Assembly: GCA_965112735.1 (NCBI GenBank)
Contig: OZ218950.1
Location: forward strand, 5,208,001 to 5,272,000
Source of the DNA: Phaeosaccion multiseriatum
Lineage: Eukaryota > Protista > Ochrophyta, other classes
Direction: 5' to 3'
Length of the DNA: 64,000 nucleotides
How positions within the stretch are numbered: position 1 is the stretch's first letter; each line of letters opens with the position of its first letter. Below are positions 214 to 64,000 of the stretch, one piece after another. The notes beneath the pieces are model-generated. The model made no database searches. It had not been told where the DNA came from and worked only from the letters and a program-made list of their open reading frames with translations. The position numbers and the translations under genes were made by a program.

Positions 214-1668
214 GAGGGCCTTCCCGACTTTGACGAGGAAGATCCACTCACGCAAGTGAAAGGGGCGAGCACTGCCGTGTGGGCAGCGCCGCCCCCGCCG
301 AGCGCCGGCACCAAGAAAGGACGCAGGGCTGCACGCGGACAGGAGCAAGGGGGCTCTTCCGGGCAAACGGCCCCGGCGGTAGAAACAGTGCATGAGGCAT
401 TGGTAGCGGAAGGAGCAGCAGCAGAGGCCACAAGGGAAGCGCAGCGCCCGACCCTGACCTTGCAGGGCGTCCCCAGGGGGCAACGGCAGATCTCTCTTGA
501 TCAGGAAGTGGAAGAAGTGAGTCTACCTCCTGGGGTAGAGGACATTGACGCAGGGTCGGACATGGAGTTTGACCCGGGCTATATGAATCAGTACTACCAG
601 AACCTCCGGAGCCTCGATCGAAAGTACCCGGTCCAGCCGGTCTTGGACAATGAGGGGCTGCTGCTGCCTTGCTCGAGGAGTACTCGGCGCAGGGCCATCG
701 TGTGGATGATGAACATCTGCCGACAGGGGGATGTGGAGGGGGAGGCGATGTTCATGGCTGTGCAGCTGTTGGACAGGGCGCTGCTGAGGATGCAAGACAT
801 GACCAAGAGGGACATGGAGAAGATTGTAACGGTGTGCATCACAGTGGCCACTAAGGTGAGAGGGCTCAAGGGGCGAGCGGTGAGGTGGGGGTCGGCAAGA
901 GGCACAGGCACAGGAGGTCGGGGGCGGCGCCTTTTATCTCTCTTGTCTCTTTCTCTCTCTGTCAGGGAGTAATCCCAACGGCTTGTCTGCTTTCCCCTTT
1001 TGTTGTCTCTTGGGTCTCAAGTTTGTGTGTGAGGAGCACATCCACCCGGGCGAGATGGCCCGACAGTGGGACAACATTTACACCAAGCAGGTAAGGAGAG
1101 AAAGTATCTTTTGCCTATTTTCAATAGAGCTTGCACCGGCCTGCTGCTTCACCTTGCTTGACAACCAACGCCCGTGCCCTTTCTATTGGCCCCAACCCCA
1201 CAGGAACTGGTGTCGTCCGAGGTCGTGCTACTGGGCCTGCTGGAGTATCGCATCGTGTGCGCCTCTTCCATTCAGTTCGCGCCCCGTTACTGCCTCGCCG
1301 CAGGGTTTAACAAGGACTCGTGCCCCAAGGCCTTCCATCTTGTCCACTATCTCTTGGAGCTGGCGCTGCTCGAGTACGACTTTGTGCCCTTCAGTGCGTC
1401 TCTCAAGGCGGCCTCCGCGGTCAACCTCGCTGCCCAGACGCTCAAGACAAGTGGCCTTTTTCGGCCTGGGTGGGGCGCGCAGTGCCTGTTCTACACCGGC
1501 CACGCGCCGCCGGAGCTGGAGGAGTGTGCGCGCATGTTGCTGGAGCGACAAGCGCGGGCCGATTTTGACCTGCCGGATGCGGATGTGGTGGTGGCCAAGT
1601 ACAACACCAGGGGCTACTATTACGCCTCCGCCGTGCCCGCCATGAATCCGCGAGAGCTCACCTTCTGA
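214..1668 (+). CDS. Cyclin (A/B-like, divergent), 5' partial; exons approx. 214-855, 1022-1090, 1204-1668
   Basis: Cyclin-box-like segments RRAIVWMMNIC..AMFMAVQLLDRAL..VCITVATK|FVCEE..ELVSSEVVLLGLLEYRI and C-terminal box YLLELALLEYDFVPFSASLKAASAV; GT-AG junctions keep the frame. The start codon was not identified; a donor-like gtgagt at 15-20 suggests upstream exons. Confidence 0.85.
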
Positions 1669-9617: not shown

Positions 9618-9649
<32 letters not shown>

Positions 9650-27797: not shown

Positions 27798-28236
27798 ATG
27801 CCGCGGTGGCCGTGGCTCACCATGCTGCTCTATGCGGTAGCATGGTGGGCCCTGCTGTCGGCCCCGGTAGTCTTGGCACAGGTGTGCGAAGACTTTACCG
27901 GTGAGGAGAATGGCGGCTACTGGGCGCAAGTGGCCAAGTGTGGCAGCTGCAATGAGGTCGACGGGTGCGGCTACTGCTTGTCGACGCTTCAGTGCCTCAA
28001 TGGGGATGCGCAAGGCCCTTTGGATGGGTCTCCTTGCCCCAACTGGGTGGTGTCAGGGGGGGCCTGCCCCGTTGTGCCAGTGTGCAGCGCTTATCCAGAC
28101 TGCTCAACGTGCGCCCAGGACGAGGATTGCGCCTGGTGCGCGTCGGAGGCACAGTGCATGACAATCTCTGAGATCTTCAGCACGGACTGCCGCGGCACTG
28201 TCTTCGATCTGCCTTGCCCTTCTTCGTACATCGGAG
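27798..28236 (+). other. Exon 1 of the giant gene: signal peptide plus two PSI-like (plexin/attractin-type) Cys-rich modules
   Basis: MPRWPWLTMLLYAVAWWALLSAPVVLA|QVC signal-like N-terminus; CGSCNEVDGCGYCLSTLQC and CSTCAQDEDCAWCASEAQC fit CxxCx5Cx[WY]Cx5C. Confidence 0.8.
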
Positions 28237-34200: not shown

Positions 34201-37200
34201 GTTGCAAGTGACCACACTGCAGTACTCTTCGGATGAGCGCATCAAGACCAACATCAATGATCTCGACGTCGATGACCTTCTCCAGCGCTTCCAGGCCGTG
34301 CAGATGAAGGAGTATGGATACACGGAAGAGTGGCGGCGCGTGCGTGAGCTCGAGGGCGACCCTCGTGTGCGAGGAGTCATCGCTCAGCAGCTGGCGACTG
34401 TCTTCCCCGAGCATGTGGACATCATCCCTGAGTACACACTCGAAGACAAGGACTTTACCATTGCGGGCTTCCACCAGGTGGACAAGACCTCTCTCGTTGT
34501 TGACTTGGTGGGTGCGCTGCAGTCGATGCATCGGCGCTTCTCTGTGGGAGCTAGCACGCCCTTCCGAAGCGGCGTCATCAGCATCGGCACGGACGACGCT
34601 GGCAGCTATTTCAACGCCGACGCCGACGGTACAAGCGGTGCGCTCAACCTCACGACTGGTACCTCCACAATAGGTACTACAGGAGCCATCATGATCACGA
34701 CTGGAGACTCTACACGGGGCGCCTCCGGCAACATTTCCCTGCAAGTTGGGTCTGGCTTGTCCGGCGGCGGCGGAATGATGGAGCTGAGCAGCGACGTCTT
34801 GCTAGCGGGAGGGAACTCCACCCATTTGACGGGCAGAGGAGGCTCATTGCTGCTGCAAGGTGGCGTGGACTTGTACAGCGAAACCGCCGGGGGAGGCAAT
34901 ATTACCCTCATGGCAGGTCTCTCTCACTCCGGCATTGGTGGTTCAGTGTTGATCACAAGTGGAGAAGGGCCCAGGAACAGCTCCGGTCCCATCACCATTC
35001 GATCTGCAAACGGCGGTCAGGAGGGCACCAGCGGCTCCCTCGTGTTCCAATCTGGCACATCCGGCTCCGGCAACTCAGGACGAGTCATGATTGGTTCGGG
35101 TGCCGCCGAGGGCGGACGAGGCGGTGGGCTGGAGCTCTTGGTTGGCAGCGGAACCAGCGGAATGGGAGGCCACTTGCTTGCTCGAGCTGGTCACGCTGAG
35201 ATTATGACTGGAGGAGAAGTGGTACTTTCCAGCGGAACGAGCGAGTTCACAAGCAGCGGACCCGTTCGAATCTCCACAGCAAACGCCGGTCTGTTCGGCG
35301 CAAGCGGCCTACTCTCTCTCTCCACTGGCACCTCAAGTATGGGCAACACTGGAGCCATCTCCCTGCGAACCTCCGGAGCCGCCTTTGGGACTGCGGGCGC
35401 GATATCTCTCACAGTGGGGACGGGCGCTAGCGGTGCGGGGGCAGGCGTATCACTGCAGTCCGGCACTACCAGTGCTGAAGAGAAGGCCGGAGGGAGCGTG
35501 AGCGTGAGAGCTGGTGATGGCACGAGTGCCGTGGGTGGCATGGGAGGCAACGTGCTCCTCTTCGCGGGCTCAGGGGCTTCCGCTACCGGAGGCTCCGTCC
35601 GAATCACAAGCGGCGTTGGTGAGCTGTCGTCCAGTGGGGTTGTGCGCATTCTCTCAGCCAATGCAGGCTATGACGGCGCGAGCGGCTTTCTCAGCTTCAG
35701 TTCGGGAACGTCTAGCAGCGGCAACAGCGGAGACATTCTCATCGGTAGCGGCTCTGCGACAGGTGGACGTGGCGGCTTGCTGAGTTTGACGGTCGGGACT
35801 GGAAACAGCGGAGCCGGAGGACTAGTGAGGACCTGGGCAGGGGACAGCAGTGCGGCCACTGGAGGAGCGATAGCGATATCAACTGGGTCGGGAATTGCAT
35901 CAAGCAGCGGTACCGTGTCCATTCGCACGGCCAATGCTGGATACTACGGCGCAAGCGGTCTGTTGTCATTCAGCTCCGGTACGTCGAGCTCAGGCAACAC
36001 AGGCGCTATTTTGATCGGCACAGGGACAGCTACGGGGGGCCGTGGTGGCTTGATCAGCATCACAGTCGGGCTAGCGCAGTGTGGTAGTGGTGGTAGACTG
36101 AGTCTTGCGGCAGGCCAAAGCAGGTATCTGACTGGAGGAACAGTTTGGATGCAGTCCGGCGCTGGGACCGCCACCTCCAGCGGCGCTGTCAATATACGGA
36201 CCGCCAACGCTGGACGAGATGGGACGAGTGGACTTCTTTCCTTCAGCTCCGGCACGTCAAGCTCTGGAAACAGTGGATCGGTGATGATTGGCTCAGGACC
36301 GGCGACGGGAGGCCGTGGGGGGATGCTATCACTCACTGTGGGAACCGGAACGTGTGGCACTGGCGGTGACGTGTACGTCCACGCCGGGGATGCCAAGACA
36401 GCGAATGCCTACACGGGCGGATCGATCGCTCTTGGCTCAGGTAGAGGATTCATTACGAGCAGCGGCTCAATCACAATAACCTCACACAACGCCGGCACTC
36501 AAGGCGTTAGCGGCCTGCTGGTATTTAGCTCGGGGACAACTAGCTCAGGTAATAGCGGCGCGGTGCTCATCGGCAGCGGCGCCAGCACGGGAGGACGCGG
36601 CGGCATGGTGAGCCTGACGGCGGGCAGCGGCACCAGCGGCGCTGGCGGTCTGGTGCAGATGTATGCTGGTGTGAGCACGGTACTGACGGGCGGTGTGGTG
36701 AGCATCGGGGGCGGCGAGGGTCGCGCGTCCACGAGCGGGTCTGTGACTGTGCGCTCTCTGAACGCTGGCACGGCTGGCACGAGTGGTCGTTTGGTGTTCA
36801 GCTCCGGCACGGCGAACTCCGGCAACAGCGGCGCCGTGCTCATCGGCAGCGGCGCCAGCACGGGAGGGCGTGGCGGCATGGTGAGCCTGACGGCGGGCAG
36901 CGGCACCAGCGGCGCTGGCGGTCTGGTGCAGATGTATGCTGGTGTGAGCACGGTACTGACGGGCGGTGTGGTGAGCATCGGGGGCGGCGAGGGTCGCGCG
37001 TCCACAAGCGGGTCTGTGACTGTGCGCTCTCTGAACGCTGGCACGGCTGGCACGAGTGGTCGTCTGATATTCAGCTCCGGCACGGCCAACTCCGGCAACA
37101 GCGGCGCCGTGCTCATCGGCAGTGGCGCCAGCACGGGAGGACGTGGCGGCATGGTGAGCCTGACGGCGGGCAGCGGCACCAGCGGCGCTGGCGGTCTGGT

Positions 37201-40200
37201 GCAGATGTATGCTGGCGTGAGCACGGTACTGACGGGCGGTGTGGTGAGCATCGGGGGCGGCGAGGGCCGCGCGTCCACGAGCGGGTCTGTGACTGTGCGC
37301 TCTCTGAACGCTGGCACGGCCGGCACGAGTGGTCGTCTGGTGTTCAGCTCCGGCACGGCCAACTCCGGCAACAGCGGCGCCGTGCTCATCGGCAGCGGCG
37401 CCAGCACGGGAGGACGTGGCGGCATGGTGAGCCTGACGGCGGGCAGCGGCACCAGCGGCGCTGGCGGTCTGGTGCAGATGTATGCTGGTGTGAGCACGGT
37501 ACTGACGGGCGGTGTGGTGAGCATCGGGGGCGGTGAGGGCCGCGCGTCCACGAGCGGGTCCGTGACTGTGCGCTCTCTGAACGCTGGCACGGCTGGCACG
37601 AGTGGTCGTCTGGTGTTCAGCTCCGGCACGGCCAACTCCGGCAACAGCGGCGCCGTGCTCATCGGCAGCGGCGCCAGCACGGGAGGACGTGGCGGCATGG
37701 TGAGCCTGACGGCGGGCAGCGGCACCAGCGGCGCTGGCGGTCTGGTGCAGATGTATGCTGGTGTGAGCACGGTACTGACGGGCGGTGTGGTGAGCATCGG
37801 GGGCGGCGAGGGCCGCGCGTCCACGAGCGGGTCTGTGACTGTGCGCTCTCTGAACGCTGGCACGGCTGGCACGAGTGGTCGTCTGGTATTCAGCTCCGGC
37901 ACGGCCAACTCCGGCAACAGCGGCGCCGTGCTCATCGGAAGTGGCGCCAGCACGGGAGGACGTGGCGGCATGGTGAGCCTGACGGCGGGCAGCGGCACCA
38001 GCGGCGCTGGCGGTCTGGTGCAGATGTATGCTGGCGTGAGCACGGTACTGACGGGCGGTGTGGTGAGCATCGGGGGCGGCGAGGGCCGCGCGTCCACGAG
38101 CGGGTCTGTGACTGTGCGCTCTCTGAACGCTGGTGCGGCTGGCTCGAGTGGTCGTCTGGTGTTCAGCTCCGGCACGGCCAACTCCGGCAACAGCGGCGCC
38201 GTGCTCATCGGCAGCGGCGCCAGCACGGGAGGACGTGGCGGCATGGTGAGCCTGACGGCGGGCAGCGGCACCAGCGGCGCTGGCGGTCTGGTGCAGATGT
38301 ATGCTGGCGTGAGCACGGTACTGACGGGCGGTGTGGTGAGCATCGGGGGCGGCGAGGGTCGCGCGTCCACGAGCGGGTCTGTGACTGTGCGCTCTCTGAA
38401 CGCTGGCACGGCTGGCACGAGTGGTCGTCTGGTGTTCAGCTCCGGCACGGCCAACTCCGGCAACAGCGGCGCCGTGCTCATCGGCAGCGGCGCCAGCACG
38501 GGAGGACGTGGCGGCATGGTGAGCCTGACGGCGGGCAGCGGCACCAGCGGCGCTGGCGGTCTGGTGCAGATGTATGCTGGTGTGAGCACGGTACTGACGG
38601 GCGGTGTGGTGAGCATCGGGGGCGGTGAGGGCCGCGCGTCCACGAGCGGGTCTGTGACTGTGCGCTCTCTGAACGCTGGCACGGCTGGCACGAGTGGTCG
38701 TCTGGTATTCAGCTCCGGCACGGCCAACTCCGGCAACAGCGGCGCCGTGCTCATCGGAAGTGGCGCCAGCACGGGAGGACGTGGCGGCATGGTGAGCCTG
38801 ACGGCGGGCAGCGGCACCAGCGGCGCTGGCGGTCTGGTGCAGATGTATGCTGGCGTGAGCACGGTACTGACGGGCGGTGTGGTGAGCATCGGGGGCGGCG
38901 AGGGCCGCGCGTCCACGAGCGGGTCTGTGACTGTGCGCTCTCTGAACGCTGGTGCGGCTGGCTCGAGTGGTCGTCTGGTGTTCAGCTCCGGCACGGCCAA
39001 CTCCGGCAACAGCGGCGCCGTGCTCATCGGCAGCGGCGCCAGCACGGGAGGACGTGGCGGCATGGTGAGCCTGACGGCGGGCAGCGGCACCAGCGGCGCT
39101 GGTGGTCTGGTGCAGATGTATGCTGGTGTGAGCACGGTACTGACGGGCGGTGTGGTGAGCATCGGGGGCGGCGAGGGTCGCGCGTCCACGAGCGGGTCTG
39201 TGACTGTGCGCTCTCTGAACGCTGGCACGGCTGGTACGAGTGGTCGTCTGGTGTTCAGCTCCGGCACGGCCAACTCTGGCAACAGCGGCGCCGTGCTCAT
39301 CGGCAGCGGCGCCAGCACTGGAGGGCGTGGCGGCATGCTGAGCCTGACGGCGGGCAGCGGCACCAGCGGCGCTGGTGGTCTGGTGCAGATGTATGCTGGT
39401 GTGAGCACGGTACTGACGGGCGGTGTGGTGAGCATCGGGGGCGGCGAGGGCCGCGCGTCCACGAGCGGGGCTGTGACTGTGCGCTCTCTGAACGCTGGCA
39501 CGAAGGGTACGAGTGGTCGTCTGGTGTTCAGCTCCGGCACGGCCAACTCCGGCAACAGCGGCGCCGTGCTCATCGGCAGCGGCGCCAGCACGGGAGGACG
39601 TGGCGGCATGGTGAGCCTGACGGCGGGCAGCGGCACCAGCGGCGCTGGCGGTCTGGTGCAGATGTATGCTGGCGTGAGCACGGTACTGACGGGCGGTGTG
39701 GTGAGCATCGGAGGCGGCGAGGGCCGCGCCTCCACGAGCGGGTCTGTGACTGTACGGTCTCTGAACGCTGGCACGGCCGGCACGAGTGGTCGTTTGGTGT
39801 TCAGCTCCGGCACGGCCAACTCCGGCAACAGCGGCGCCGTGCTCATCGGCAGCGGCGCCAGCACGGGAGGGCGTGGCGGCATGGTGAGCCTGACGGCGGG
39901 CAGCGGCACCAGCGGCGCTGGCGGTCTGGTGCAGATGTATGCTGGTGTGAGCACGGTACTGACGGGCGGTGTGGTGAGCATCGGGGGCGGCGAGGGCCGC
40001 GCGTCCACGAGCGGGTCTGTGACTGTGCGCTCTCTGAACGCTGGTGCGGCCGGCTCGAGTGGTCGTCTGGTGTTCAGCTCCGGCACGGCCAACTCCGGCA
40101 ACAGCGGCGCCGTGCTCATCGGCAGCGGCGCCAGCACGGGAGGACGTGGCGGCATGGTGAGCCTGACGGCGGGCAGTGGCACCAGCGGCGCTGGCGGTCT

Positions 40201-43200
40201 GGTGCAGATGTATGCTGGTGTGAGCACGGTACTGACGGGCGGTGTGGTGAGTATCGGGGGCGGCGAGGGCCGCGCGTCCACGAGCGGGTCTGTGACTGTG
40301 CGCTCTCTGAACGCTGGCACGGCTGGCACGAGTGGTCGTCTGGTGTTCAGCTCTGGCACGGCCAACTCCGGCAACAGCGGCGCCGTGCTCATCGGCAGCG
40401 GCGCGAGCACGGGAGGACGTGGCGGTATGGTGAGCCTGACGGCGGGCAGCGGCACCAGCGGCGCTGGTGGTCTGGTGCAGATGTATGCTGGTGTGAGCAC
40501 GGTACTGACGGGCGGTGTGGTGAGCATCGGGGGCGGCGAGGGCCGCGCGTCCACGAGCGGATCCTTGACTGTGCGGTCTCTGAACGCTGGCACGGCTGGC
40601 ACGAGTGGCCGTCTGGTGTTCAGCTCCGGCACGGCCAACTCCGGCAACAGCGGCGCCGTGCTCATCGGCAGCGGCGCCAGCACGGGAGGACGCGGCGGCA
40701 TGGTGAGCTTGACGGCGGGCAGCGGCACCAGCGGCGCTGGCGGTCTGGTGCAGATGTATGCTGGTGTGAGCACGGTACTGACGGGCGGTGTGGTGAGCAT
40801 CGGGGGCGGCGAGGGCCGCGCGTCCACGAGCGGGTCTGTGACTGTGCGCTCTCTGAACGCTGGCACGGCTGGCACGAGTGGTCGTCTGGTGTTCAGCTCC
40901 GGCACGGCCAACTCCGGCAACAGCGGCGCCGTGCTCATCGGCAGCGGCGCCAGCACGGGAGGACGTGGCGGCATGGTGAGCCTGACGGCGGGCAGCGGCA
41001 CCAGCGGCGCTGGCGGTCTGGTGCAGATGTATGCTGGTGTGAGCACTGTACTGACGGGCGGTGTGGTGAGCATCGGAGGCGGCGAGGGCCGCGCGTCCAC
41101 GAGCGGGTCTGTGACTGTGCGCTCTCTGAACGCTGGCACGAAGGGCACGAGTGGTCGTCTGGTGTTCAGCTCCGGCACGGCCAACTCCGGCAACAGCGGC
41201 GCCGTGCTCATCGGCAGTGGCGCCAGCACGGGAGGACGTGGCGGCATGGTGAGCCTGACGGCGGGCAGCGGCACCAGCGGCGCTGGCGGTCTGGTGCAGA
41301 TGTATGCTGGTGTGAGCACGGTACTGACGGGCGGTGTGGTGAGCATCGGGGGCGGCGAGGGCCGCGCGTCCACGAGCGGGTCTGTGACTGTGCGCTCTCT
41401 GAACGCTGGCACGGCCGGCACGAGTGGTCGTCTGGTATTCAGCTCCGGCACGGCCAACTCCGGCAACAGCGGCGCCGTGCTCATCGGCAGCGGCGCCAGC
41501 ACGGGAGGACGTGGCGGCATGGTGAGCCTGACGGCGGGCAGCGGCACCAGCGGCGCTGGCGGTCTGGTGCAGATGTATGCTGGCGTGAGCACGGTACTGA
41601 CGGGTGGAGTAGTCAGCATCGGGGGCGGCGAGGGCCGCGCGTCCACGAGCGGGTCTGTGACTGTGCGGTCTCTGAACGCTGGCACGGCCGGCACGAGTGG
41701 TCGTCTGGTGTTCAGCTCCGGCACGGCCAACTCCGGCAACAGCGGCGCCGTGCTCATCGGCAGCGGCGCCAGCACAGGAGGGCGTGGTGGCATGGTGAGC
41801 CTGACGGCGGGCAGCGGCACCAGCGGCGCTGGTGGTCTGGTGCAGATGTATGCTGGTGTGAGCACGGTACTGACGGGCGGTGTGGTGAGCATCGGGGGCG
41901 GCGAGGGCCGCGCGTCCACAAGTGGGTCCGTGACTGTGCGGTCTCTGAACGCTGGCACGGCCGGCACGAGTGGTCGTCTGGTGTTCAGCTCCGGCACGGC
42001 CAACTCCGGTAACAGCGGCGCCGTGCTCATCGGCAGCGGCGCCAGCACGGGAGGACGTGGCGGCATGGTGAGCCTGACGGCGGGCAGCGGCACCAGCGGC
42101 GCTGGCGGTCTGGTGCAGATGTATGCTGGCCTGAGCACGGTACTGACGGGCGGTGTGGTGAGCATCGGGGGCGGCGAGGGCCGCGCGTCCACAAGCGGGT
42201 CTGTGACTGTGCGCTCTCTGAACGCTGGCACGGCTGGCACGAGTGGTCGTCTGGTGTTCAGCTCCGGCACGGCCAACTCCGGCAACAGCGGCGCCGTGCT
42301 CATCGGCAGCGGCGCCAGCACGGGAGGGCGTGGCGGCATGGTGAGCCTGACGGCGGGCAGTGGCACCAGCGGCGCTGGCGGTCTGGTGCAGATGTATGCT
42401 GGTGTGAGCACGGTACTGACGGGCGGTGTGGTGAGCATCGGGGGCGGCGAGGGCCGCACGTCCACGAGCGGGTCTGTGACTGTGCGCTCTCTGAACGCTG
42501 GTGCGGCTGGCACGAGTGGTCGTCTGATATTCAGCTCCGGCACGGCCAACTCCGGCAACAGCGGCGCCGTGCTCATCGGCAGCGGCGCGAGCACGGGAGG
42601 ACGTGGTGGCATGGTGAGCCTGACGGCGGGCAGCGGCACCAGCGGCGCTGGCGGTCTGGTGCAGATGTATGCTGGTGTGAGCACGGTACTGACGGGCGGT
42701 GTGGTGAGCATCGGGGGCGGCGAGGGCCGCGCGTCCACGAGCGGGTCTGTGACTGTGCGCTCTTTGAACGCTGGTGCGGCCGGCTCAAGTGGTCGTCTGG
42801 TGTTCAGCTCCGGCACGGCCAACTCCGGCAACAGCGGCGCCGTGCTCATCGGCAGCGGCGCCAGCACGGGAGGGCGTGGTGGTATGGTGAGCCTGACGGC
42901 GGGCAGCGGCACCAGCGGCGCTGGCGGTCTGGTGCAGATGTATGCTGGTGTGAGCACGGTACTGACGGGCGGTGTGGTGAGCATCGGGGGCGGCGAGGGC
43001 CGCACGTCCACGAGCGGGTCTGTGACTGTGCGCTCTCTGAACGCTGGCACGGCCGGCACGAGTGGTCGTCTGGTGTTCAGCTCTGGCACGGCCAACTCCG
43101 GCAACAGCGGCGCCGTGCTCATCGGCAGCGGCGCCAGCACGGGAGGACGTGGCGGCATGGTGAGCCTGACGGCGGGCAGCGGCACCAGCGGCGCTGGCGG

Positions 43201-52200: not shown

Positions 52201-55200
52201 CGCTGGCGGTCTGGTGCAGATGTATGCTGGTGTGAGCATTGTCCTGACGGGCGGTGTGGTGAGCATCGGGGGCGGCGAGGGCCGCGCGTCCACGAGCGGG
52301 TCTGTGACTGTGCGCTCTCTGAACGCTGGCACGGCTGGTACGAGTGGTCGTCTGGTGTTCAGCTCTGGCACGGCCAACTCCGGCAACAGCGGCGCCGTGC
52401 TCATCGGCAGCGGCGCCAGCACGGGAGGACGTGGCGGCATGGTGAGCCTGACGGCGGGCAGCGGCACCAGCGGCGCTGGCGGTCTGGTGCAGATGTATGC
52501 TGGTGTGAGCACGGTACTGACGGGCGGTGTGGTGAGCATCGGGGGCGGCGAGGGCCGCGCATCCACGAGCGGGTCTGTGACTGTGCGCTCTCTGAACGCT
52601 GGCACGGCTGGCACGAGTGGTCGTCTGGTGTTCAGCTCCGGCACGGCCAACTCCGGCAACAGCGGCGCCGTGCTCATCGGCAGCGGCGCCAGCACGGGAG
52701 GACGTGGCGGCATGGTGAGCCTGACGGTGGGCAGCGGCACCAGCGGCGCTGGCGGTCTGGTGCAGATGTATGCTGGCGTGAGCACGGTACTGACGGGCGG
52801 TGTGGTGAGCATCGGGGGCGGTGAGGGCCGCGCGTCCACGAGCGGGTCTGTGACTGTGCGCTCTCTGAATGCTGGCACGGCTGGTACGAGTGGTCGTCTG
52901 GTGTTCAGCTCCGGCACGGCCAACTCCGGCAACAGCGGCGCCGTGCTCATCGGTAGTGGCGCCAGCACGGGAGGACGCGGCGGCATGGTGAGCCTGACGG
53001 CGGGCAGCGGCACCAGCGGCGCTGGCGGTCTGGTGCAGATGTATGCTGGTGTGAGCACGGTACTGACGGGCGGTGTGGTGAGCATCGGGGGCGGCGAGGG
53101 TCGAGCGTCCACGAGCGGGTCTGTGACTGTGCGCTCTCTGAACGCTGGCACGGCTGGCACGAGTGGTCGTCTGGTGTTCAGCTCCGGCACGGCCAACTCC
53201 GGCAACAGCGGCGCCGTGCTCATCGGCAGCGGCGCCAGCACGGGAGGGCGTGGCGGCATGGTGAGCCTGACGGCGGGCAGCGGCACCAGCGGCGCTGGCG
53301 GTCTGGTGCAAATGTATGCTGGTGTGAGCACGGTACTGACGGGCGGTGTGGTGAGCATCGGGGGCGGCGAGGGCCGCGCGTCCACGAGCGGGTCTGTGAC
53401 TGTGCGCTCTCTGAACGCTGGCACGGCTGGCACGAGTGGTCGTCTGGTGTTCAGCTCTGGCACAGCCAACTCCGGCAACAGCGGCGCCGTGCTCATCGGC
53501 AGCGGCGCCAGCACGGGAGGACGTGGCGGCATGGTGAGCCTGACGGCGGGCAGCGGCACCAGCGGCGCTGGCGGTCTGGTGCAGATGTATGCTGGTGTGA
53601 GCACGGTACTGACGGGTGGAGTGGTGAGCATCGGGGGCGGCGAGGGCCGCGCGTCCACGAGCGGGTCTGTGACTGTGCGCTCTCTGAACGCTGGCACGAA
53701 GGGTACGAGTGGTCGTCTGGTGTTCAGCTCCGGCACGGCCAACTCCGGCAACAGCGGCGCCGTGCTCATCGGCAGCGGCGCCAGCACGGGAGGACGTGGC
53801 GGCATGGTGAGCCTGACGGCGGGCAGCGGCACGAGTGGCGCTGGCGGTCTGGTGCAGATGTATGCTGGCGTGAGCACGGTACTGACGGGCGGTGTGGTGA
53901 GCATCGGGGGCGGCGAGGGCCGCGCGTCCACGAGCGGGTCTGTGACTGTGCGCTCTCTGAACGCTGGCACGGCTGGCACGAGTGGTCGTCTGGTGTTCAG
54001 CTCCGGCACGGCCAACTCCGGCAACAGCGGCGCCGTGCTCATCGGCAGCGGCGCCAGCACGGGAGGACGTGGCGGCATGGTGAGCCTGACGGCGGGCAGC
54101 GGCACGAGTGGCACTGGCGGTCTGGTACGGATGTATGCTGGTGTGAGCACGGTACTGACGGGCGGTGTGGTGAGCATCGGGGGCGGCGAGGGCCGCGCGT
54201 CCACGAGCGGGTCTGTGACTGTGCGCTCTCTGAACGCTGGCACGGCCGGCACGAGTGGTCGTCTGGTGTTCAGCTCCGGCACGGCCAACTCCGGCAACAG
54301 CGGCGCCGTGCTCATCGGCAGCGGCGCCAGCACGGGAGGACGTGGCGGCATGGTGAGCCTGACGGCGGGCAGCGGCACGAGTGGCGCTGGCGGTCTGGTG
54401 CAGATGTATGCTGGTGTGAGCACGGTACTGACGGGCGGTGTGGTGAGCATCGGGGGCGGCGAGGGCCGCGCGTCCACGAGCGGGTCTGTGACTGTGCGCT
54501 CTCTGAACGCTGGTACGGCTGGCACGAGTGGTCGTCTGGTGTTCAGCTCCGGCACGGCCAACTCCGGCAACAGCGGCGCCGTGCTCATCGGCAGCGGCGC
54601 CAGCACGGGAGGGCGTGGCGGCATGGTGAGCCTGACGGCGGGCAGCGGCACCAGCGGCGCTGGCGGTCTGGTGCAGATGTATGCTGGCGTGAGCACGGTA
54701 CTGACGGGCGGTGTGGTGAGCATCGGGGGCGGCGAGGGCCGCGCGTCCACGAGCGGGTCTGTGACTGTGCGCTCTCTGAACGCTGGCACGGCTGGCACGA
54801 GTGGTCGTCTGGTGTTCAGCTCCGGCACGGCCAACTCCGGCAACAGCGGCGCCGTGCTCATCGGCAGCGGCGCCAGCACGGGGGGGCGTGGTGGCATGGT
54901 GAGCCTGACGGCGGGCAGCGGCACCAGCGGCGCTGGCGGTCTGGTGCAGATGTATGCTGGCGTGAGCACGGTACTGACGGGCGGTGTGGTGAGCATCGGG
55001 GGCGGCGAGGGCCGCGCGTCCACGAGCGGGTCTGTGACTGTGCGCTCTCTGAACGCTGGCACGAAGGGTACGAGTGGTCGTCTGGTGTTCAGCTCCGGCA
55101 CGGCCAACTCCGGCAACAGCGGCGCCGTGCTCATCGGCAGCGGCGCCAGCACGGGAGGACGTGGCGGCATGGTGAGCCTGACGGCGGGCAGCGGCACGAG

Positions 55201-58200
55201 TGGCGCTGGCGGTCTGGTGCAGATGTATGCTGGTGTGAGCACGGTACTGACGGGTGGTGTGGTGAGCATCGGGGGCGGCGAGGGTCGCGCCTCCACGAGC
55301 GGGTCTGTGACTGTGCGCTCTCTGAACGCTGGCACGGCTGGTACGAGTGGTCGTCTGGTGTTCAGCTCCGGCACGGCCAACTCCGGCAACAGCGGCGCCG
55401 TGCTCATCGGCAGTGGCGCCAGCACGGGAGGACGTGGCGGCATGGTGAGCCTGACGGCGGGCAGCGGCACCAGCGGCGCTGGCGGTCTGGTGCAGATGTA
55501 TGCCGGCGTGAGCACGGTACTGACGGGCGGTGTGGTGAGCATCGGGGGCGGCGAGGGCCGCGCGTCCACGAGCGGGTCTGTGACTGTGCGGTCTCTGAAC
55601 GCTGGCACGGCCGGCACGAGTGGTCGTCTGGTGTTCAGCTCTGGCACAGCCAACTCCGGCAACAGCGGCGCCGTGCTCATCGGCAGCGGCGCCAGCACGG
55701 GAGGACGCGGCGGCATGGTGAGCCTGACGGCGGGCAGCGGCACCAGCGGCGCTGGCGGTCTGGTGCAGATGTATGCTGGTGTGAGCACGGTACTGACGGG
55801 CGGTGTGGTGAGCATTGGAGGCGGCGAGGGCCGCGCGTCCACGAGCGGGTCTGTGACTGTGCGCTCTCTGAACGCTGGCACGGCTGGTACGAGTGGTCGT
55901 CTGGTGTTCAGCTCCGGCACGGCCAACTCCGGCAACAGCGGCGCCGTGCTCATCGGCAGCGGCGCCAGCACGGGAGGGCGTGGCGGCATGGTGAGCCTGA
56001 CGGCGGGCAGCGGCACCAGCGGCGCTGGCGGTCTGGTGCAGATGTATGCTGGCGTGAGCACGGTACTGACGGGCGGTGTGGTGAGCATCGGGGGCGGCGA
56101 GGGCCGCGCGTCCACGAGCGGGTCTGTGACTGTGCGCTCTCTGAACGCTGGCACGAAGGGTACGAGTGGTCGTCTGGTATTCAGCTCCGGCACGGCCAAC
56201 TCCGGCAACAGCGGCGCCGTGCTCATCGGCAGCGGCGCCAGCACGGGAGGACGTGGCGGCATGGTGAGCCTGACGGCGGGCAGCGGCACGAGTGGCGCTG
56301 GCGGTCTGGTGCAGATGTATGCTGGTGTGAGCACGGTACTGACGGGCGGTGTGGTGAGCATCGGGGGCGGCGAGGGCCGCGCGTCCACGAGCGGGTCTGT
56401 GACTGTGCGCTCTCTGAACGCTGGCACGGCTGGCACGAGTGGTCGTCTGGTGTTCAGCTCCGGCACGGCCAACTCCGGCAACAGCGGCGCCGTGCTCATC
56501 GGCAGCGGCGCCAGCACGGGAGGACGTGGCGGCATGGTGAGCCTGACGGCGGGCAGCGGTACCAGCGGCGCTGGCGGTCTGGTGCAGATGTATGCTGGCG
56601 TGAGCACGGTACTGACGGGCGGTGTGATGAGCATCGGGGGTGGCGAGGGCCGCGCGTCCACGAGCGGGTCTGTGACTGTGCGCTCTCTGAATGCTGGCAC
56701 GGCTGGCACGAGTGGTCGTCTGGTGTTCAGCTCTGGCACAGCCAACTCCGGCAACAGCGGCGCCGTGCTCATCGGCAGCGGCGCCAGCACGGGAGGACGC
56801 GGCGGCATGGTGAGCCTGACGGCGGGCAGCGGCACCAGCGGCGCTGGCGGTCTGGTGCAGATGTATGCTGGTGTGAGCACGGTACTGACGGGCGGTGTGG
56901 TGAGCATCGGGGGCGGCGAGGGCCGCGCGTCCACGAGCGGGTCTGTGACTGTGCGCTCTCTGAACGCTGGCACGGCTGGCACGAGTGGTCGTCTGGTGTT
57001 CAGCTCCGGCACGGCCAACTCCGGCAACAGCGGCGCCGTGCTCATCGGCAGCGGCGCCAGCACGGGAGGACGCGGCGGCATGGTGAGCCTGACGGCGGGC
57101 AGCGGCACGAGTGGCGCTGGTGGTCTGGTGCAGATGTATGCTGGTGTGAGCACGGTACTGACGGGCGGTGGGGTGAGCATCGGGGGCGGCGAGGGCCGCG
57201 CGTCCACGAGCGGGTCTGTGACTGTGCGCTCTCTGAACGCTGGTACGGCTGGCACGAGTGGTCGTCTGGTGTTCAGCTCCGGCACGGCCAACTCCGGCAA
57301 CAGCGGCGCCGTGCTCATCGGCAGCGGTGCCAGCACGGGAGGGCGTGGCGGCATGGTGAGCCTGACGGCGGGCAGCGGCACCAGCGGCGCTGGCGGTCTG
57401 GTGCAGATGTATGCTGGTATGAGCACGGTACTGACGGGCGGTGTGGTGAGCATCGGGGGCGGCGAGGGCCGCGCGTCCACGAGCGGGTCTGTGACTGTGC
57501 GCTCTCTGAACGCTGGCACGGCTGGCACGAGTGGTCGTCTGGTGTTCAGCTCCGGCACGGCCAACTCCGGCAACAGCGGCGCCGTGCTCATCGGAAGTGG
57601 CGCCAGCACGGGAGGACGTGGCGGCATGGTGAGCCTGACGGCGGGCAGCGGTACCAGCGGCGCTGGCGGTCTGGTGCAGATGTATGCTGGTGTGAGCACG
57701 GTACTGACGGGCGGTGTGGTGAGCATCGGAGGTGGCGAGGGCCGCGCGTCCACAAGTGGGTCTGTGACTGTGCGCTCTCTGAACGCTGGCACGGCGGGCA
57801 CGAGTGGTCGTCTGGTGTTCAGCTCCGGCACGGCCAACTCCGGCAACAGCGGCGCCGTGCTCATCGGCAGCGGCGCCAGCACGGGAGGACGCGGCGGCAT
57901 GCTGAGCCTGACGGCGGGCAGCGGCACCAGCGGCGCTGGCGCTCTGGTGCAGATGTATGCTGGTGTGAGCACGGTACTGACGGGCGGTGTGGTGAGCATC
58001 GGGGGCGGCGAGGGCCGCGCGTCCACGAGCGGGTCTGTGACTGTGCGCTCTCTGAACGCTGGCACGGCTGGCACGAGTGGTCGTCTGGTGTTCAGCTCCG
58101 GCACGGCCAACTCCGGCAACAGCGGCGCCGTGCTCATCGGCAGCGGCGCCAGCACGGGAGGGCGTGGTGGCATGGTGAGCCTGACGGCGGGCAGCGGCAC

Positions 58201-61200
58201 CAGCGGCGCTGGCGGTCTGGTGCAGATGTATGCTGGTGTGAGTACGGTACTGACGGGCGGTGTGGTGAGCATCGGGGGCGGCGAGGGCCGCGCGTCCACG
58301 AGCGGGTCTGTGACTGTGCGCTCTCTGAACGCTGGCACGGCTGGTACGAGTGGTCGTCTGGTGTTCAGCTCTGGCACGGCCAACTCCGGCAACAGCGGCG
58401 CCGTGCTCATCGGCAGCGGCGCCAGCACGGGAGGACGTGGCGGCATGGTGAGCCTGACGGCGGGCAGCGGCACCAGCGGCGCTGGCGGTCTGGTGCAGAT
58501 GTATGCTGGTGTGAGCACGGTACTGACGGGTGGAGTGGTGAGCATCGGGGGCGGCGAGGGCCGCGCATCCACAAGCGGGTCTGTGACTGTGCGCTCTCTG
58601 AACGCTGGCACGGCTGGTACGAGTGGTCGTCTGGTGTTCAGCTCCGGCACGGCCAACTCCGGCAACAGCGGCGCCGTGCTCATCGGCAGCGGCGCCAGCA
58701 CGGGAGGACGTGGCGGCATGGTGAGCCTGACGGCGGGCAGCGGCACCAGCGGCGCTGGCGGTCTGGTGCAGATGTATGCTGGTGTGAGCACGGTACTGAC
58801 GGGCGGTGTGGTGAGCATCGGGGGCGGCGAGGGCCGCGCGTCCACGAGCGGGTCTGTGACTGTGCGCTCACTGAACGCTGGCACGGCTGGCACGAGTGGT
58901 CGTCTGGTGTTCAGCTCCGGCACGGCCAACTCCGGCAACAGCGGCGCCGTGCTCATCGGCAGTGGCGCCAGCACGGGAGGGCGTGGCGGCATGGTGAGCC
59001 TGACGGCGGGCAGCGGCACCAGCGGCGCTGGCGGTCTGGTGCAGATGTATGCTGGTGTGAGCACGGTACTGACGGGCGGTGTGGTGAGCATCGGGGGTGG
59101 CGAGGGCCGCGCGTCCACAAGTGGGTCTGTGACTGTGCGCTCTCTGAACGCTGGTACGGCTGGCACGAGTGGTCGTCTGGTGTTCAGCTCCGGCACGGCC
59201 AACTCCGGCAACAGCGGCGCCGTGCTCATCGGCAGCGGCGCCAGCACGGGAGGACGTGGCGGCATGGTGAGCCTGACGGCGGGCAGCGGCACCAGCGGCG
59301 CTGGCGGTCTGGTGCAGATGTATGCTGGTGTGAGCACGGTACTGACGGGCGGTGTGGTGAGCATCGGGGGCGGCGAGGGCCGCGCGTCCACGAGCGGGTC
59401 TGTGACTGTGCGCTCTCTGAACGCTGGTGCGGCTGGCACGAGTGGTCGTCTGGTGTTCAGCTCCGGCACGGCCAACTCCGGCAACAGCGGCGCCGTGCTC
59501 ATCGGCAGCGGCGCCAGCACGGGAGGGCGTGGCGGCATGGTGAGCCTGACGGCGGGCAGCGGCACCAGCGGCGCTGGCGGTCTGGTGCAGATGTATGCTG
59601 GCGTGAGCACGGTACTGACGGGCGGTGTGGTGAGCATCGGGGGCGGCGAGGGCCGCGCGTCCACGAGCGGGTCTGTGACTGTGCGGTCTCTGAACGCTGG
59701 CACGGCTGGCACGAGTGGTCGTCTGGTGTTCAGCTCCGGCACGGCCAACTCCGGCAACAGCGGCGCTGTGCTCATCGGCAGCGGCGCCAGCACGGGAGGG
59801 CGCGGCGGCATGGTGAGCCTGACGGCGGGCAGCGGCACCAGCGGCGCTGGCGGTCTGGTGCAGATGTATGCTGGCGTGAGCACGGCCCTGACGGGAGGTG
59901 TGGTGAGCATCGGAGGTGGCGAGGGCCGCGCGTCCACAAGTGGGTCTGTGACTGTGCGCTCTCTGAATGCTGGCACGGCCGGCACGAGTGGTCGTCTGGT
60001 GTTCAGCTCCGGCACGGCCAACTCCGGCAACAGCGGCGCCGTGCTCATCGGCAGCGGCGCCAGCACGGGAGGACGCGGCGGCATGGTGAGCCTGACGGCG
60101 GGCAGCGGCACGAGTGGCGCTGGCGGTCTGGTGCAGATGTATGCTGGTGTGAGCACGGTACTGACGGGCGGTGTGGTGAGCATCGGGGGCGGCGAGGGCC
60201 GCGCGTCCACGAGCGGGTCTGTGACTGTGCGCTCTCTGAACGCTGGCACGGCTGGTACGAGTGGTCGTCTGGTGTTCAGCTCCGGCACGGCCAACTCCGG
60301 CAACAGCGGCGCCGTGCTCATCGGCAGCGGCGCCAGCACGGGAGGACGTGGCGGCATGGTGAGCCTGACGGCGGGCAGCGGCACCAGCGGCGCTGGCGGT
60401 CTGGTGCAGATGTATGCTGGCGTGAGCACGGTACTGACGGGCGGTGTGGTGAGCATCGGGGGCGGCGAGGGCCGCGCGTCCACGAGCGGGTATGTGACTG
60501 TGCGCTCTCTGAACGCTGGTACGGCTGGCACGAGTGGTCGTCTGGTGTTCAGCTCCGGCACGGCCAACTCCGGCAACAGCGGCGCCGTGCTCATCGGCAG
60601 CGGCGCCAGCACGGGAGGGCGCGGCGGCATGCTGAGCCTAACGGCGGGCAGCGGCACCAGCGGCGCTGGTGGTCTGGTGCAGATGTATGCTGGTGTGAGC
60701 ACGGTACTGACGGGCGGTGTGGTGAGCATCGGGGGCGGAGAGGGCCGCGCGTCCACGAGCGGGTCTGTGACTGTGCGCTCTCTGAACGCTGGCACGGCTG
60801 GTACGAGTGGTCGTCTGGTGTTCAGCTCCGGCACGGCCAACTCCGGCAACAGCGGCGCCGTGCTCATCGGCAGCGGCGCCAGCACGGGAGGGCGTGGCGG
60901 CATGGTGAGCCTGACGGCGGGCAGCGGCACCAGCGGCGCTGGCGGTCTGGTGCAGATGTATGCTGGTGTGAGCACGGTACTGACGGGCGGTGTGGTGAGC
61001 ATCGGGGGCGGCGAGGGCCGCGCGTCCACGAGCGGGTCTGTGACTGTGCGCTCTCTGAACGCTGGCACGGCTGGCACGAGTGGTCGTCTGGTGTTCAGCT
61101 CCGGCACGGCCAACTCCGGCAACAGCGGCGCCGTGCTCATCGGCAGCGGCGCCAGCACGGGAGGACGTGGCGGCATGGTGAGCCTGACGGCGGGCAGCGG

Positions 61201-64000
61201 CACCAGCGGAGCTGGCGGTCTGGTGCAGATGTATGCTGGCGTGAGCACGGTACTGACGGGCGGTGCGGTGAGCATCGGAGGCGGCGAGGGCCGCGCCTCC
61301 ACGAGCGGGTCTGTGACTGTGCGCTCTCTGAACGCTGGCACGGCCGGTACGAGTGGTCGTCTGGTGTTCAGCTCTGGCACGGCCAACTCCGGCAACAGCG
61401 GCGCCGTGCTCATCGGCAGCGGCGCCAGCACGGGAGGACGTGGCGGCATGGTGAGCCTGACGGCGGGCAGCGGCACCAGCGGCGCTGGCGGTCTGGTGCA
61501 GATGTATGCTGGCGTAAGCACGGTACTGACGGGCGGTGTGGTGAGCATCGGGGGCGGCGAGGGCCGCGCGTCCACGAGCGGGTCTGTGACTGTGCGCTCT
61601 CTGAACGCTGGCACGGCTGGTACGAGTGGTCGTCTGGTGTTCAGCTCCGGCACGGCCAACTCCGGCAACAGCGGCGCCGTGCTCATCGGCAGCGGCGCCA
61701 GCACGGGAGGGCGTGGCGGCATGGTGAGCCTGACGGCGGGCAGCGGCACGAGTGGCGCTGGCGGTCTGGTGCAGATGTATGCTGGTGTGAGCACGGTACT
61801 GACGGGCGGTGTGATGAGCATCGGGGGCGGCGAGGGCCGCGCGTCCACGAGCGGTTCTGTGACTGTGCGCTCTCTGAACGCTGGCACGAAGGGTACGAGT
61901 GGTCGTCTGGTGTTCAGCTCTGGCACGGCCAACTCCGGCAACAGCGGCGCCGTGCTCATCGGCAGCGGCGCCAGCACGGGAGGACGTGGCGGCATGCTGA
62001 GCCTGACGGCGGGCAGCGGCACCAGCGGCGCTGGCGCTCTGGTGCAGATGTATGCTGGTGTGAGCACGGTACTGACGGGCGGTGTGGTGAGCATCGGGGG
62101 CGGCGAGGGCCGCGCGTCCACGAGCGGGTCTGTGACTGTGCGCTCTCTGAACGCTGGCACGGCTGGCACGAGTGGTCGTCTGGTGTTCAGCTCCGGCACG
62201 GCCAACTCCGGCAACAGCGGCGCCGTGCTCATCGGCAGCGGCGCGAGCACGGGAGGGCGCGGCGGCATGGTGAGCCTGACGGCGGGCAGCGGCACCAGCG
62301 GCGCTGGCGGTCTGGTGCAGATGTATGCTGGTGTGAGCACGGTACTGACGGGCGGTGTGGTGAGCATCGGAGGCGGCGAGGGCCGCGCATCCACGAGCGG
62401 GTCTGTGACTGTGCGCTCTCTGAACGCAGGGGCGGCCGGAACGAGTGGTCGTCTGGTGTTCAGCTCTGGCACGGCCAACTCCGGCAACAGCGGCGCCGTG
62501 CTCATCGGCAGCGGCGCCAGCACGGGAGGACGTGGCGGCATGGTGAGCCTGACGGCGGGCAGCGGCACGAGTGGCGCTGGCGGTCTGGTGCAGATGTATG
62601 CTGGCGTGAGCACGGTACTGACGGGCGGTGTGGTGAGCATCGGGGGCGGCGAGGGGCGTGCATCCACGAGCGGTTCTGTGACTGTGCGCTCTCTGAACGC
62701 TGGCACGAAGGGTGCGAGTGGTCGTCTGGTGTTCAGCTCCGGCACGGCCAACTCCGGCAACAGCGGCGCCGTGCTCATCGGAAGTGGCGCCAGCACGGGA
62801 GGACGTGGCGGCATGCTGAGCCTGACGGCGGGCAGCGGCACCAGCGGCGCTGGTGGTCTGGTGCAGATGTATGCTGGTGTGAGCACGGTACTGACGGGCG
62901 GTGCGGTGAGCATCGGAGGCGGCGAGGGCCGCGCCTCCACGAGCGGGTCTGTGACTGTGCGCTCTCTGAACGCTGGCACGAAGGGTACGAGCGGTCGCCT
63001 GGTGTTCAGCTCCGGTACGGCCAACTCCGGCAACAGCGGCGCCGTGCTCATCGGCAGCGGCGCCAGCACGGGAGGACGTGGCGGCATGGTGAGCCTGACG
63101 GCGGGCAGTGGCACCAGCGGCGCTGGCGGTCTGGTGCAGATGTATGCTGGCGTGAGCACGGTACTGACGGGCGGTGTGGTGAGCATCGGGGGCGGCGAGG
63201 GCCGCGCGTCCACAAGTGGTTCTGTGACTGTGCGCTCTCTGAACGCTGGCACGGCCGGCACGAGTGGTCGTCTGGTGTTCAGCTCCGGCACGGCCAACTC
63301 CGGCAACAGCGGCGCCGTGCTCATCGGCAGCGGCGCCAGCACGGGAGGACGCGGCGGCATGGTGAGCCTGACGGCGGGCAGCGGCACTAGTGGCGCTGGC
63401 GGTCTGGTGCAGATGTATGCCGGCGTGAGCACGGTACTGACGGGCGGTGTGGTGAGCATCGGGGGCGGTGAGGGCCGCGCGTCCACAAGTGGGTCTGTGA
63501 CTGTGCGCTCTCTGAACGCTGGCACGAAGGGTACGAGTGGTCGCCTGGTGTTCAGCTCCGGCACGGCCAACTCCGGCAACAGCGGCGCCGTGCTCATCGG
63601 CAGCGGCGCCAGCACGGGAGGACGTGGCGGCATGGTGAGCCTGACGGCGGGCAGCGGCACGAGTGGCGCTGGCGGTCTGGTGCAGATGTATGCTGGCGTG
63701 AGCACGGCACTGACGGGCGGTGTGGTGAGCATCGGGGGCGGCGAGGGCCGCGCGTCCACGAGCGGGTCTGTGACTGTGCGCTCCCTGAACGCTGGCACGG
63801 CTGGCACGAGTGGTCGTCTGGTGTTCAGCTCCGGCACGGCCAACTCCGGCAACAGCGGCGCCGTGCTCATCGGCAGCGGCGCCAGCACGGGAGGACGTGG
63901 CGGCATGGTGAGCCTGACGGCGGGCAGCGGCACCAGCGGCGCTGGCGGCTTGGTGCAGATGTATGCTGGTGTGAGCACGGTACTGACGGGCGGTGTGGTG
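27798..64000 (+). CDS. Giant secreted Gly/Ser/Thr-rich beta-repeat fibre protein with an internal Peptidase_S74/ICA domain; at least 11,978 aa, 3' partial; exons 27798-28236 and 28506 to >64000
   Basis: Donor GGA G|gtgagt at 28236/7 and acceptor ttgcag|AG AAC at 28505/6 join in frame. Codons checked at 34229, 36602 and 63962 are all in frame with 28508, and the ORF track lists no terminated ORF in this frame, so it appears open to the window end. Repeat variation is mostly at third codon positions. Confidence 0.92.
28640..33900 (+). repeat. Degenerate coding repeats, ~15-aa unit [GS]G-x-hydrophobic-x-hydrophobic-x-[AGST]-G, acidic
   Basis: Translation such as GGDVDMTAG, GGSVELQGG, SGDILLRTG, GGDILISSG, with recurring T-[AT]-[ND]-AG landmarks. 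Nucleotide similarity between units is low. Confidence 0.85.
34229..34540 (+). other. Peptidase_S74 / intramolecular chaperone auto-processing (ICA) domain
   Basis: SDERIKTNINDLDVDDLLQRFQAVQMKEYGYTEEWRRVRELEGDPRVRGVIAQQLATVFPEHV..FHQVDKTSLVVDLVGALQSM. It shows the S-D-x-R-x-K Ser/Lys dyad, G-x-I-A-Q and a C-terminal helix. Confidence 0.9.
36540..64000 (+). repeat. Coding tandem array of about 100 near-identical 273-bp (91-aa) units, continuing past the window end
   Basis: ATG GTG AGC CTG recurs at 36605, 36878 ... 63905; 63905-36605 = 100 x 273 exactly. Confidence 0.98.

Follow-up and report, generated by a model that had tools for sequence, protein, structure and literature searches.

We analyzed a 64,000-nucleotide stretch of DNA from the ochrophyte alga Phaeosaccion multiseriatum (assembly GCA_965112735.1, contig OZ218950.1, positions 5,208,001 to 5,272,000 of the forward strand), hereafter called the window. 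A tandem repeat with a 91-residue unit, which fills the last 27 kb of the window, is the C-terminal bulk of one giant two-exon eukaryotic gene that encodes at least 11,976 amino acids (at least 1.07 MDa) inside the window. The C-terminus lies beyond the window end and all lengths and masses given for the gene are lower bounds. Within the encoded protein, a Peptidase_S74 domain, also known as intramolecular chaperone (ICA) domain, is flanked on both sides by rungs of 15 residues. We hold, with moderate confidence, that the gene most likely builds a long extracellular fiber in which three chains are wound into a beta-helix.

A 27-kb coding repeat in a giant two-exon gene

The homogenized array (36551-64000, forward strand) consists of 100 full units of 273 nt or 91 amino acids and a further 150 nt, where it is truncated by the window end. 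Tandem Repeats Finder reported a single array (36554-64000) with a period of 273 nt, 100.5 copies, 96% matches and 0% indels. When the sequence was cut in frame from position 36551, the last complete unit, the 100th, ended at 63850 and 150 nt were left over. Mean identity of the units to their consensus was 98.1% on the DNA level and 99.2% on the protein level. The consensus unit is made up of 25 Gly, 16 Ser, 10 Val, 10 Thr, 9 Ala, 6 Leu, 4 Arg, 3 Asn, 2 Ile, 2 Met and one residue each of Gln, Tyr, Glu and Phe, and is devoid of Pro, Cys, Trp, Asp, His and Lys. These figures match an initial annotation of the DNA, made from its letters alone, in which 25 Gly, 16 Ser, 10 Thr and no Pro, Cys, Trp or Asp had been counted and the unit had been parsed into six rungs (15+15+15+16+15+15 = 91). 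The parse is exact, as the consensus unit rotated by 16 residues equals the six rungs joined, and the approximately 600 rungs estimated at the time compare with 603 counted here inside the window. The interval then assigned to the repeat, 36540-64000, agrees with the array but covers its homogenized part alone; on the forward strand, the open frame extends from 28361 through to the window end, and the start of the gene lies further upstream, at 27798. Over its whole length the array contains 28% Gly, 18% Ser, 11% Thr and 10% Ala and is strongly basic (net charge +317, pI 12). No N-x-S/T sequon, Pro or Cys was found in it.

Any stop-free unit of 273 nt yields long open frames, and two frames are indeed open here, one per strand, which is what a non-coding satellite or an assembly artifact open by chance would produce. 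The differences among the units speak against such an origin. Codon position 3 accounts for 440 of the 532 differences from the array consensus (83%), and in the forward frame 423 differences are synonymous vs 73 non-synonymous. The 100 full units comprise 97 different DNA sequences but 29 different protein sequences and contain no indels, and the coding frame runs through 9,150 codons of the array without a stop, whereas four of the other five frames carry 3-11 differences that create stops. Because of this wobble bias, the excess of DNA over protein variants and the uninterrupted frame, the array is more than a chance open frame. Moreover, the frame continues beyond the array through 8 kb of diverged repeats that include a domain scored by Pfam, and the protein has relatives with E values from 5e-65 to 8e-257. 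We consider the chance of a satellite or artifact negligible.

The variants within the array form a scattered mosaic in which linkage is confined to neighboring sites. Divergence between units shows no decay with distance, each pair differing at about nine positions at every lag from 1 to 80. On the protein level, 21 residues of the unit vary by conservative swaps (V/L/I/M and T/A/S) and by an Ala-to-Lys change at unit residue 75, a two-base codon change (unit columns 223-225) that occurs in 15 of the 100 units, scattered over the array. A mosaic lacking distance decay suggests ongoing short-tract conversion between units combined with purifying selection on the protein. The array thus provides a clean example of a 27-kb coding repeat, the protein of which is kept identical while synonymous variants are shuffled among its units.

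The synonymous bias by itself does not choose the strand of the array. An antisense frame of 9,166 codons (36502-63999, reverse strand), rich in Pro, Thr, Ala and Leu, has its wobble position in common with the coding frame and scores 399 synonymous vs 103 non-synonymous differences, close to the 423 vs 73 of the forward frame. The forward strand was assigned on the basis of the upstream sequence and of the homologs: the antisense frame stops at the array edge, and all homologs match the forward frame. The Pro-rich antisense frame was rejected as a real gene on these grounds. It is, in our judgment, a side effect of the repeat, one that automated annotation might mistake for a proline-rich wall protein.

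As delineated by open reading frame (ORF) and splice arithmetic, exon 1 (27798..28236, forward strand) starts with ATG and comprises 146 codons plus one base. Its first 28 or so residues resemble a signal peptide, with a basic residue, about 20 hydrophobic residues and V-L-A before a Gln, and are therefore regarded as a putative signal peptide. Two Cys-rich modules follow, the second of which is a PSI domain (Pfam PF01437, residues 96-126, nt 28083-28175, forward strand; E 7.5e-6, 26.6 bits vs a cut-off of 23.1). The intron (28237..28505, forward strand; 269 nt) is of the GT-AG type and reads GTGAGT...CAG. The frame of exon 1 has stops within the intron interval; the exon ends in phase 1 and splicing restores the long frame through a split Glu codon (G/AG). 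Exon 2 extends on the forward strand from 28506 to the window end at 64000 and contributes 11,830 codons and 1,070 kDa within the window. The two exons were searched separately, by reference. Pfam yielded only the PSI and S74 domains in the two exons; an NDT80-type DNA-binding domain was not found by this search and no transmembrane segment was noted.

An internal S74 domain between blocks of 15-residue rungs

The first part of exon 2 (28506..34222, forward strand) encodes about 1,900 residues of diverged 15-residue rungs, arranged in degenerate copies of the 91-residue unit. A profile hidden Markov model built from the unit tiled exon-2 residues 29-1826 and 2014-2681, with a similarity that climbed towards the array. 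The part before the S74 domain is acidic (net charge -107, pI 4.1), and its last 80 residues or so constitute a stalk that is not rich in Gly and is terminated by the conserved motif P-[LM]-Q-V-T. Some 15 residues beyond the final helix of the S74 domain, the rungs start again. The diverged units that follow (34547..36550, forward strand) are charge-neutral and become more similar to the array consensus as the array is approached, the last three being 54-60% identical to it. The part before the S74 domain and the array, which fall on different sides of the cut predicted below, are oppositely charged (-107 vs +317). This may matter for co-assembly or for binding to a matrix.

For hydrophobic residues, the top autocorrelation was found at lag 15 upstream and downstream of the S74 domain as well as in relatives from other organisms. 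Gly peaked at lag 15 upstream of the S74 domain and in relative P0001 and at lag 7 in relatives P0002 and P0003, and in the diverged rungs it showed a secondary period of 7/8. From 112 diverged rungs with a modal spacing of 15 we derived the consensus [S/G]-G-x-[VLI]-x-[LIF]-x-[SAT]-G-x-[SAG]-x-[SAG]-[G/A]-x, in which turn Gly residues are conserved and two hydrophobic positions lie one residue apart (h-x-h). The turn Gly and the alternating hydrophobic pattern that had been described for each rung in the initial annotation are thereby supported. Across eleven full units, whose identity to the array unit is 34-60%, sixteen Gly/Ser columns are invariant, and the rung pattern is kept both in copies of this divergence and in other phyla. 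Short periodic repeats, turn Gly residues and alternating inward hydrophobics are a trait of triple-stranded beta-helices and are present here.

The core of the Peptidase_S74 domain (PF13884) is located at 34229..34417 on the forward strand (E 5.9e-12 and 3.2e-13, 46.1 and 50.2 bits vs a cut-off of 22), and tail-fiber families of the PHROGs collection match the same stretch with E values down to 2.4e-17. The whole conserved domain spans approximately 34190-34564, corresponding to exon-2 residues 1895-2020 or thereabouts of at least 11,830. It is internal and resides in an intron-containing gene with cellular neighbors, in contrast to the extreme C-terminal position and viral context of the phage type. 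Its best relative among solved structures, as judged by sequence, is the ICA domain of MYRF (7dc3, E 6.5e-6). The second Ser and the Lys of the motif Y-S-S-D-E-R-I-K align to S587 (Ala in the crystal construct) and K592 of MYRF, the catalytic dyad that corresponds to S911/K916 of endoNF (PMC8326128). The Ser-Lys dyad is intact: the predicted nucleophile Ser (34229-34231) is followed five residues later by the predicted general-base Lys (34244-34246, both on the forward strand) at the N-terminal edge of the domain. Cleavage would probably occur before the second Ser of the motif. The sequence alignment to 7dc3 extends into the helix region, in which L-x-x-D-L-[IV]-G-A-L-Q is conserved in the relatives. 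Every ICA domain studied so far forms trimers via its C-terminal helix, assists the folding of a beta-helical stalk and is active in cleavage only in the trimeric state (PMC8326128, PMC3742443).

A word search with the diverged part retrieved a transcript product of 3,798 residues from Nephroselmis pyriformis (E 8e-257; about 1,700 residues aligned at 33% identity), which is derived from a transcriptome and has a signal-peptide-like start, a 2,635-residue EukProt protein with an internal S74 domain and a 2,378-residue protein encoded amid housekeeping genes on a metagenome contig of a compact photosynthetic eukaryote. Short relatives include a protein of Phytophthora ramorum. When the unit profile was run against 1.84 billion representatives, 1,851 clusters were found with E <= 0.001, 513 with E <= 1e-10 and 43 with E <= 1e-30. 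Named relatives, all of them entered as 'unnamed' or 'hypothetical' proteins, belong to Ectocarpus, Lagenidium giganteum, Phytophthora and Nephroselmis. Green algae, brown algae and oomycetes are represented among them, in each case by uncharacterized proteins. At three further loci, the contigs are filled end to end with consecutive Gly/Ser-rich ORFs; one of these loci adjoins a tubulin-tyrosine-ligase gene. The family occurs in other eukaryotes, and relatives sit amid ordinary cellular genes.

The same S74 subfamily is present in twelve fetched relatives and in the Logan contig L003, always between rung blocks, and the stalk plus S74 sequence is 46-60% identical in the relatives. One of the fetched relatives has three S74 copies and another has two, about 370 residues apart. 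In P0036 (L004:11000-13621) and P0135 the first copy possesses the nucleophile Ser, while the later copies have Ala or Asp in its place and keep the Lys along with the remainder of the domain; the single copy of P0043 has Ala at the nucleophile position. Later copies that lack the Ser but are otherwise preserved fit a role as a trimer clamp that is separate from cutting.

The initial annotation had proposed a profile search to map the family across eukaryotes, bacteria and phages, and the searches delivered the eukaryotic part of this distribution only. Scans of bacterial and archaeal species genomes with P0007 and P0052 gave no rung relatives. Nor were any obtained from cultured phages, where tblastn matches were limited to the S74 part and P0007 as the query had no match, or from IMG/VR, where the scans gave one giant-virus S74 protein without rungs. 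This protein of 515 residues, with an S74 domain of the same S-S-D-x-R-I-K-T-N-I type, is encoded on a contig from a giant-virus metagenome-assembled genome (L006:7080-8627, GC 24%), next to an ORF for a SNF2/RING-like helicase. No family in Pfam, NCBIfam or PHROGs matched the rung regions, including the filamentous haemagglutinin, Chlamydia PMP and autotransporter repeats, and the unit profile gave antibody noise and no real match against the sequences in the PDB. Giant kin of 5,500-17,500 residues were not encountered in the word search, a metagenome pattern scan for the codons of an 11-residue stretch of the unit was negative and the window had no DNA similarity to the fetched relative loci.

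Evidence for and against a trimeric fiber

The initial annotation had predicted a rigid fiber formed by either a beta-solenoid or a triple beta-helix and had proposed structure prediction as a check. AlphaFold2 was run on monomers and the outcome was ambiguous. The model of three array units (9-row alignment) had a pLDDT of 46.7 and was devoid of secondary structure. A four-unit model that combined three diverged units with one array unit (34-row alignment) had a pLDDT of 65.7 and a pTM of 0.56; the central 130 residues reached a pLDDT of 70-79, and DSSP assigned no strands of three or more residues. As monomer models based on shallow alignments, both represent a weak test of a beta-solenoid. 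Foldseek found no significant neighbor of the four-unit model in the PDB, the one listed match (E 5.8, not significant) being a chain of the phage hyaluronidase HylP that is part of a triple-stranded beta-helix. Two significant matches were obtained in BFVD (E 1.5e-5 and 8e-4), both with low TM-scores and both to unnamed proteins of uncultured tailed phages.

These results bear on the possibility that a single chain forms the rod. Each 15-residue rung would then be one flattened coil with its hydrophobic strand packed on a strand of small residues, and the S74 domain would merely bundle three rods at one point. The rung accommodates two candidate strands (positions 3-7 and 10-13, with positions 4/6 and 11/13 facing inward and Gly at 2, 9 and 14), the 7/8 sub-period of Gly is in keeping with this arrangement and coils of 14-15 residues occur in some ice-binding proteins. 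AlphaFold2, however, usually recovers monomeric solenoids; here the stacked intrachain strands of a confident monomer model were absent and no solenoid appeared in the PDB and BFVD searches. In addition, two large hydrophobics per 15 residues make a thin core for a coil that stands alone, and S74 domains are known solely with intertwined or trimeric stalks (PMC8326128). We regard a single-chain solenoid as unlikely. The strandless models are compatible with a trimer, since intrachain sheets would be missing from any one chain of an intertwined trimer, and they argue weakly against a stand-alone solenoid while allowing for a flexible chain. Together with the periodicity, the S74 domain favors a triple beta-helix over a solenoid because in every studied case this domain trimerizes and folds a beta-helical stalk (PMC8326128). 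The prediction of a rigid structure was not borne out by the models, which are weak and contain no strands, and the interpretation of the array as a fiber is partly supported overall.

A flexible chain would be the basis of another explanation, in which the protein is a silk-like secreted matrix or adhesive, rich in Gly, Ser, Thr and Ala and mostly disordered, that forms intermolecular beta-sheets or a gel after secretion and no defined rod. It agrees with the composition of the array and with the pLDDT of 46.7 for pure array units, and a polycationic chain of pI 12 would suit binding to anionic wall polysaccharides. On the other hand, a disordered spacer would not be expected to keep Gly and h-x-h at a 15-residue spacing in distant relatives. 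The absence of Pro, the strict unit length with no indels in 27 kb and the presence of a folding chaperone domain in the same chain also argue against it. We consider this explanation rather improbable.

The three-chain fiber that we favor would be formed as follows. The signal peptide would route the chain into the secretory pathway. The internal S74/ICA domain would then join three chains via its C-terminal helix and set their register, and the 15-residue rungs on both sides would zip into a three-chain beta-helical fiber. That the ICA domain acts as an in-line trimer clamp is suggested because the same type of rung flanks it on either side and because relatives repeat it every 370 residues or so, with dead copies among them. 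Cleavage by the Ser-Lys dyad, probably before the Ser at 34229-34231, would part an acidic, PSI-capped fiber of about 2,050 residues from a basic fiber of at least 9,900 residues with the ICA trimer retained at its head. This would yield an extracellular filament of a few hundred nanometers, the length of which would be set by the number of units. It might serve as a hair, a tether or a wall filament, as the initial annotation had speculated, or as an adhesive thread. One may speculate that its polycationic array would also suit binding to anionic polymers of the wall or matrix.

Stacked strands in beta-helices are spaced by 0.48 nm. If each rung formed one layer, the 603 array rungs would extend over about 0.29 µm, in line with the 0.3 µm originally predicted, which depends on this premise; under other beta-helical geometries the length could be up to about double, namely about 0.58 µm if half-rungs of 7-8 residues form the faces. 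Either way, the six rungs or twelve half-rungs of a unit would correspond to a whole number of turns of a three-faced helix. A surface or matrix fiber of such a size should be visible by electron microscopy and could match a known structure for which no gene is known.

Several points weigh against a trimeric fiber. Flexible or silk-like proteins typically have a similar composition (56% Gly+Ser+Thr here), and the AlphaFold2 scores are low to moderate (pLDDT 46.7 and 65.7). The ICA domain of phages is C-terminal and folds the part upstream of it, and no precedent is known for 9,800 residues that fold on its downstream side. Furthermore, 100 near-identical units pose a register problem in a trimer that one clamp may not solve. 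Finally, the C-terminus of the gene is located outside the window.

The remaining alternative is that the gene encodes the fiber of an integrated virus, polinton-like or giant, and is not cellular at all. Polinton-like viruses that have integrated into protist genomes commonly encode S74-tipped fiber proteins of up to 3.9k amino acids (PMC12220804), algal giant viruses have genes that combine S74 and beta-helix regions, and the GC content climbs from 0.58 to 0.62-0.70 across the gene. This rise is mostly due to Gly codons: GC3 is 0.75 in exon 1 and 0.79 in the array, near the 0.72 of the neighboring PPR gene. The spliceosomal GT-AG intron and the exon with a putative signal peptide and a PSI domain are likewise at odds with a viral gene, as are the location of relatives amid housekeeping genes and the single, rungless S74 protein from IMG/VR. 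No viral hallmark is present in the upstream 28 kb, which carry genes of the cyclin, NB-ARC/TPR and PPR types; the window ends before the right flank of the gene. We deem a viral origin very unlikely.

Apart from the giant gene, the window contains ordinary eukaryotic genes and microsatellites. A Cyclin_N ORF (49-969, forward strand, E 1.3e-10) is probably one cyclin exon cut by the window start. ORF pieces at 7993-14444 on the forward strand match NB-ARC (E 7e-4, below the cut-off) and TPR_12 (E 9e-13) and probably represent exons of a single NB-ARC/TPR gene. At 14318-14384 lies an 18-nt tandem repeat rich in GT. On the reverse strand, a PPR-repeat ORF (26103-27263, PPR_2 E 9e-19) has an N-terminal half with a long Ser-rich low-complexity tract that stems from a GGA/TCC microsatellite (26930-27167).

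Comparison with known systems

With phage tail fibers and spikes such as the K1F endosialidase endoNF, the L-shaped tail fiber of T5 and the neck appendage of GA-1, the P. multiseriatum protein shares the S74 domain, the dyad of Ser-x4-Lys and a stalk ahead of it. By analogy, trimerization, chaperoned beta-helical folding and self-cleavage would be expected as common behavior. In the phage proteins, however, the S74 domain is C-terminal and discarded, whereas here it is internal and followed by at least 9,800 residues. Furthermore, the gene is cellular, contains an intron, encodes a signal peptide-like start and is 10-20 times longer, and its rung repeat is unmatched in phage collections.

MYRF/MrfA provides the best match of solved structure (7dc3) and is likewise eukaryotic, with an internal ICA domain and a cut that parts two functional halves (PMC8326128, PMC3742443). 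It differs in that neither an NDT80-type domain was found nor a transmembrane segment noted here, in that our protein is predicted to be secreted while MYRF resides in the endoplasmic reticulum membrane facing the cytosol, and in the flanks, which here consist of thousands of residues of rung repeats. The fibers of polinton-like viruses and algal giant viruses resemble the protein as large modular S74 proteins, sometimes with long beta-helical (FhaB-like) regions, but their S74 domain is C-terminal, single and in a viral context, whereas here the repeat is of another type and a viral context is missing.

Giant bacterial adhesins, for example the 1.5-MDa ice-binding adhesin of Marinomonas, use about 100 near-identical repeats of about 100 residues as an extender that sets their length. 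The design of a 100-repeat extender for a sub-micron surface fiber is similar. In contrast to the protein studied here, these bacterial adhesins are single chains of Ig-like beads stiffened by calcium, do not contain S74 and are not expected to form trimers.

The S74 domain, beta-helical fibers and giant repeat extenders are thus all known as parts. In the literature searched we found the phage, MYRF and viral cases of S74 and no description of the present family, and the combination of an intron-containing eukaryotic gene for a predicted secreted protein with an internal ICA, a repeat family that has no counterpart in Pfam, NCBIfam or the PDB sequences and a homogenized array of more than 9,000 residues appears to be undescribed. 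Tentatively, we suggest that it may represent an undescribed class of cellular eukaryotic fibers made with borrowed phage machinery, in which in-line ICA domains, cutting or dead, serve as register-setting trimer clamps between rung blocks. In that case, a single cut would here split an acidic fiber from a polycationic one of more than 1 MDa and about 100 units, and algae and oomycetes would possess a surface filament or adhesive thread on the micron scale that bears no relation to the known hairs, scales and wall proteins. If the trimeric model is right, eukaryotic cells, like phages, use the S74/ICA domain for trimeric fibers, which would be 10-20 times larger than those of phages and have the domain in an internal position, sometimes in several copies.

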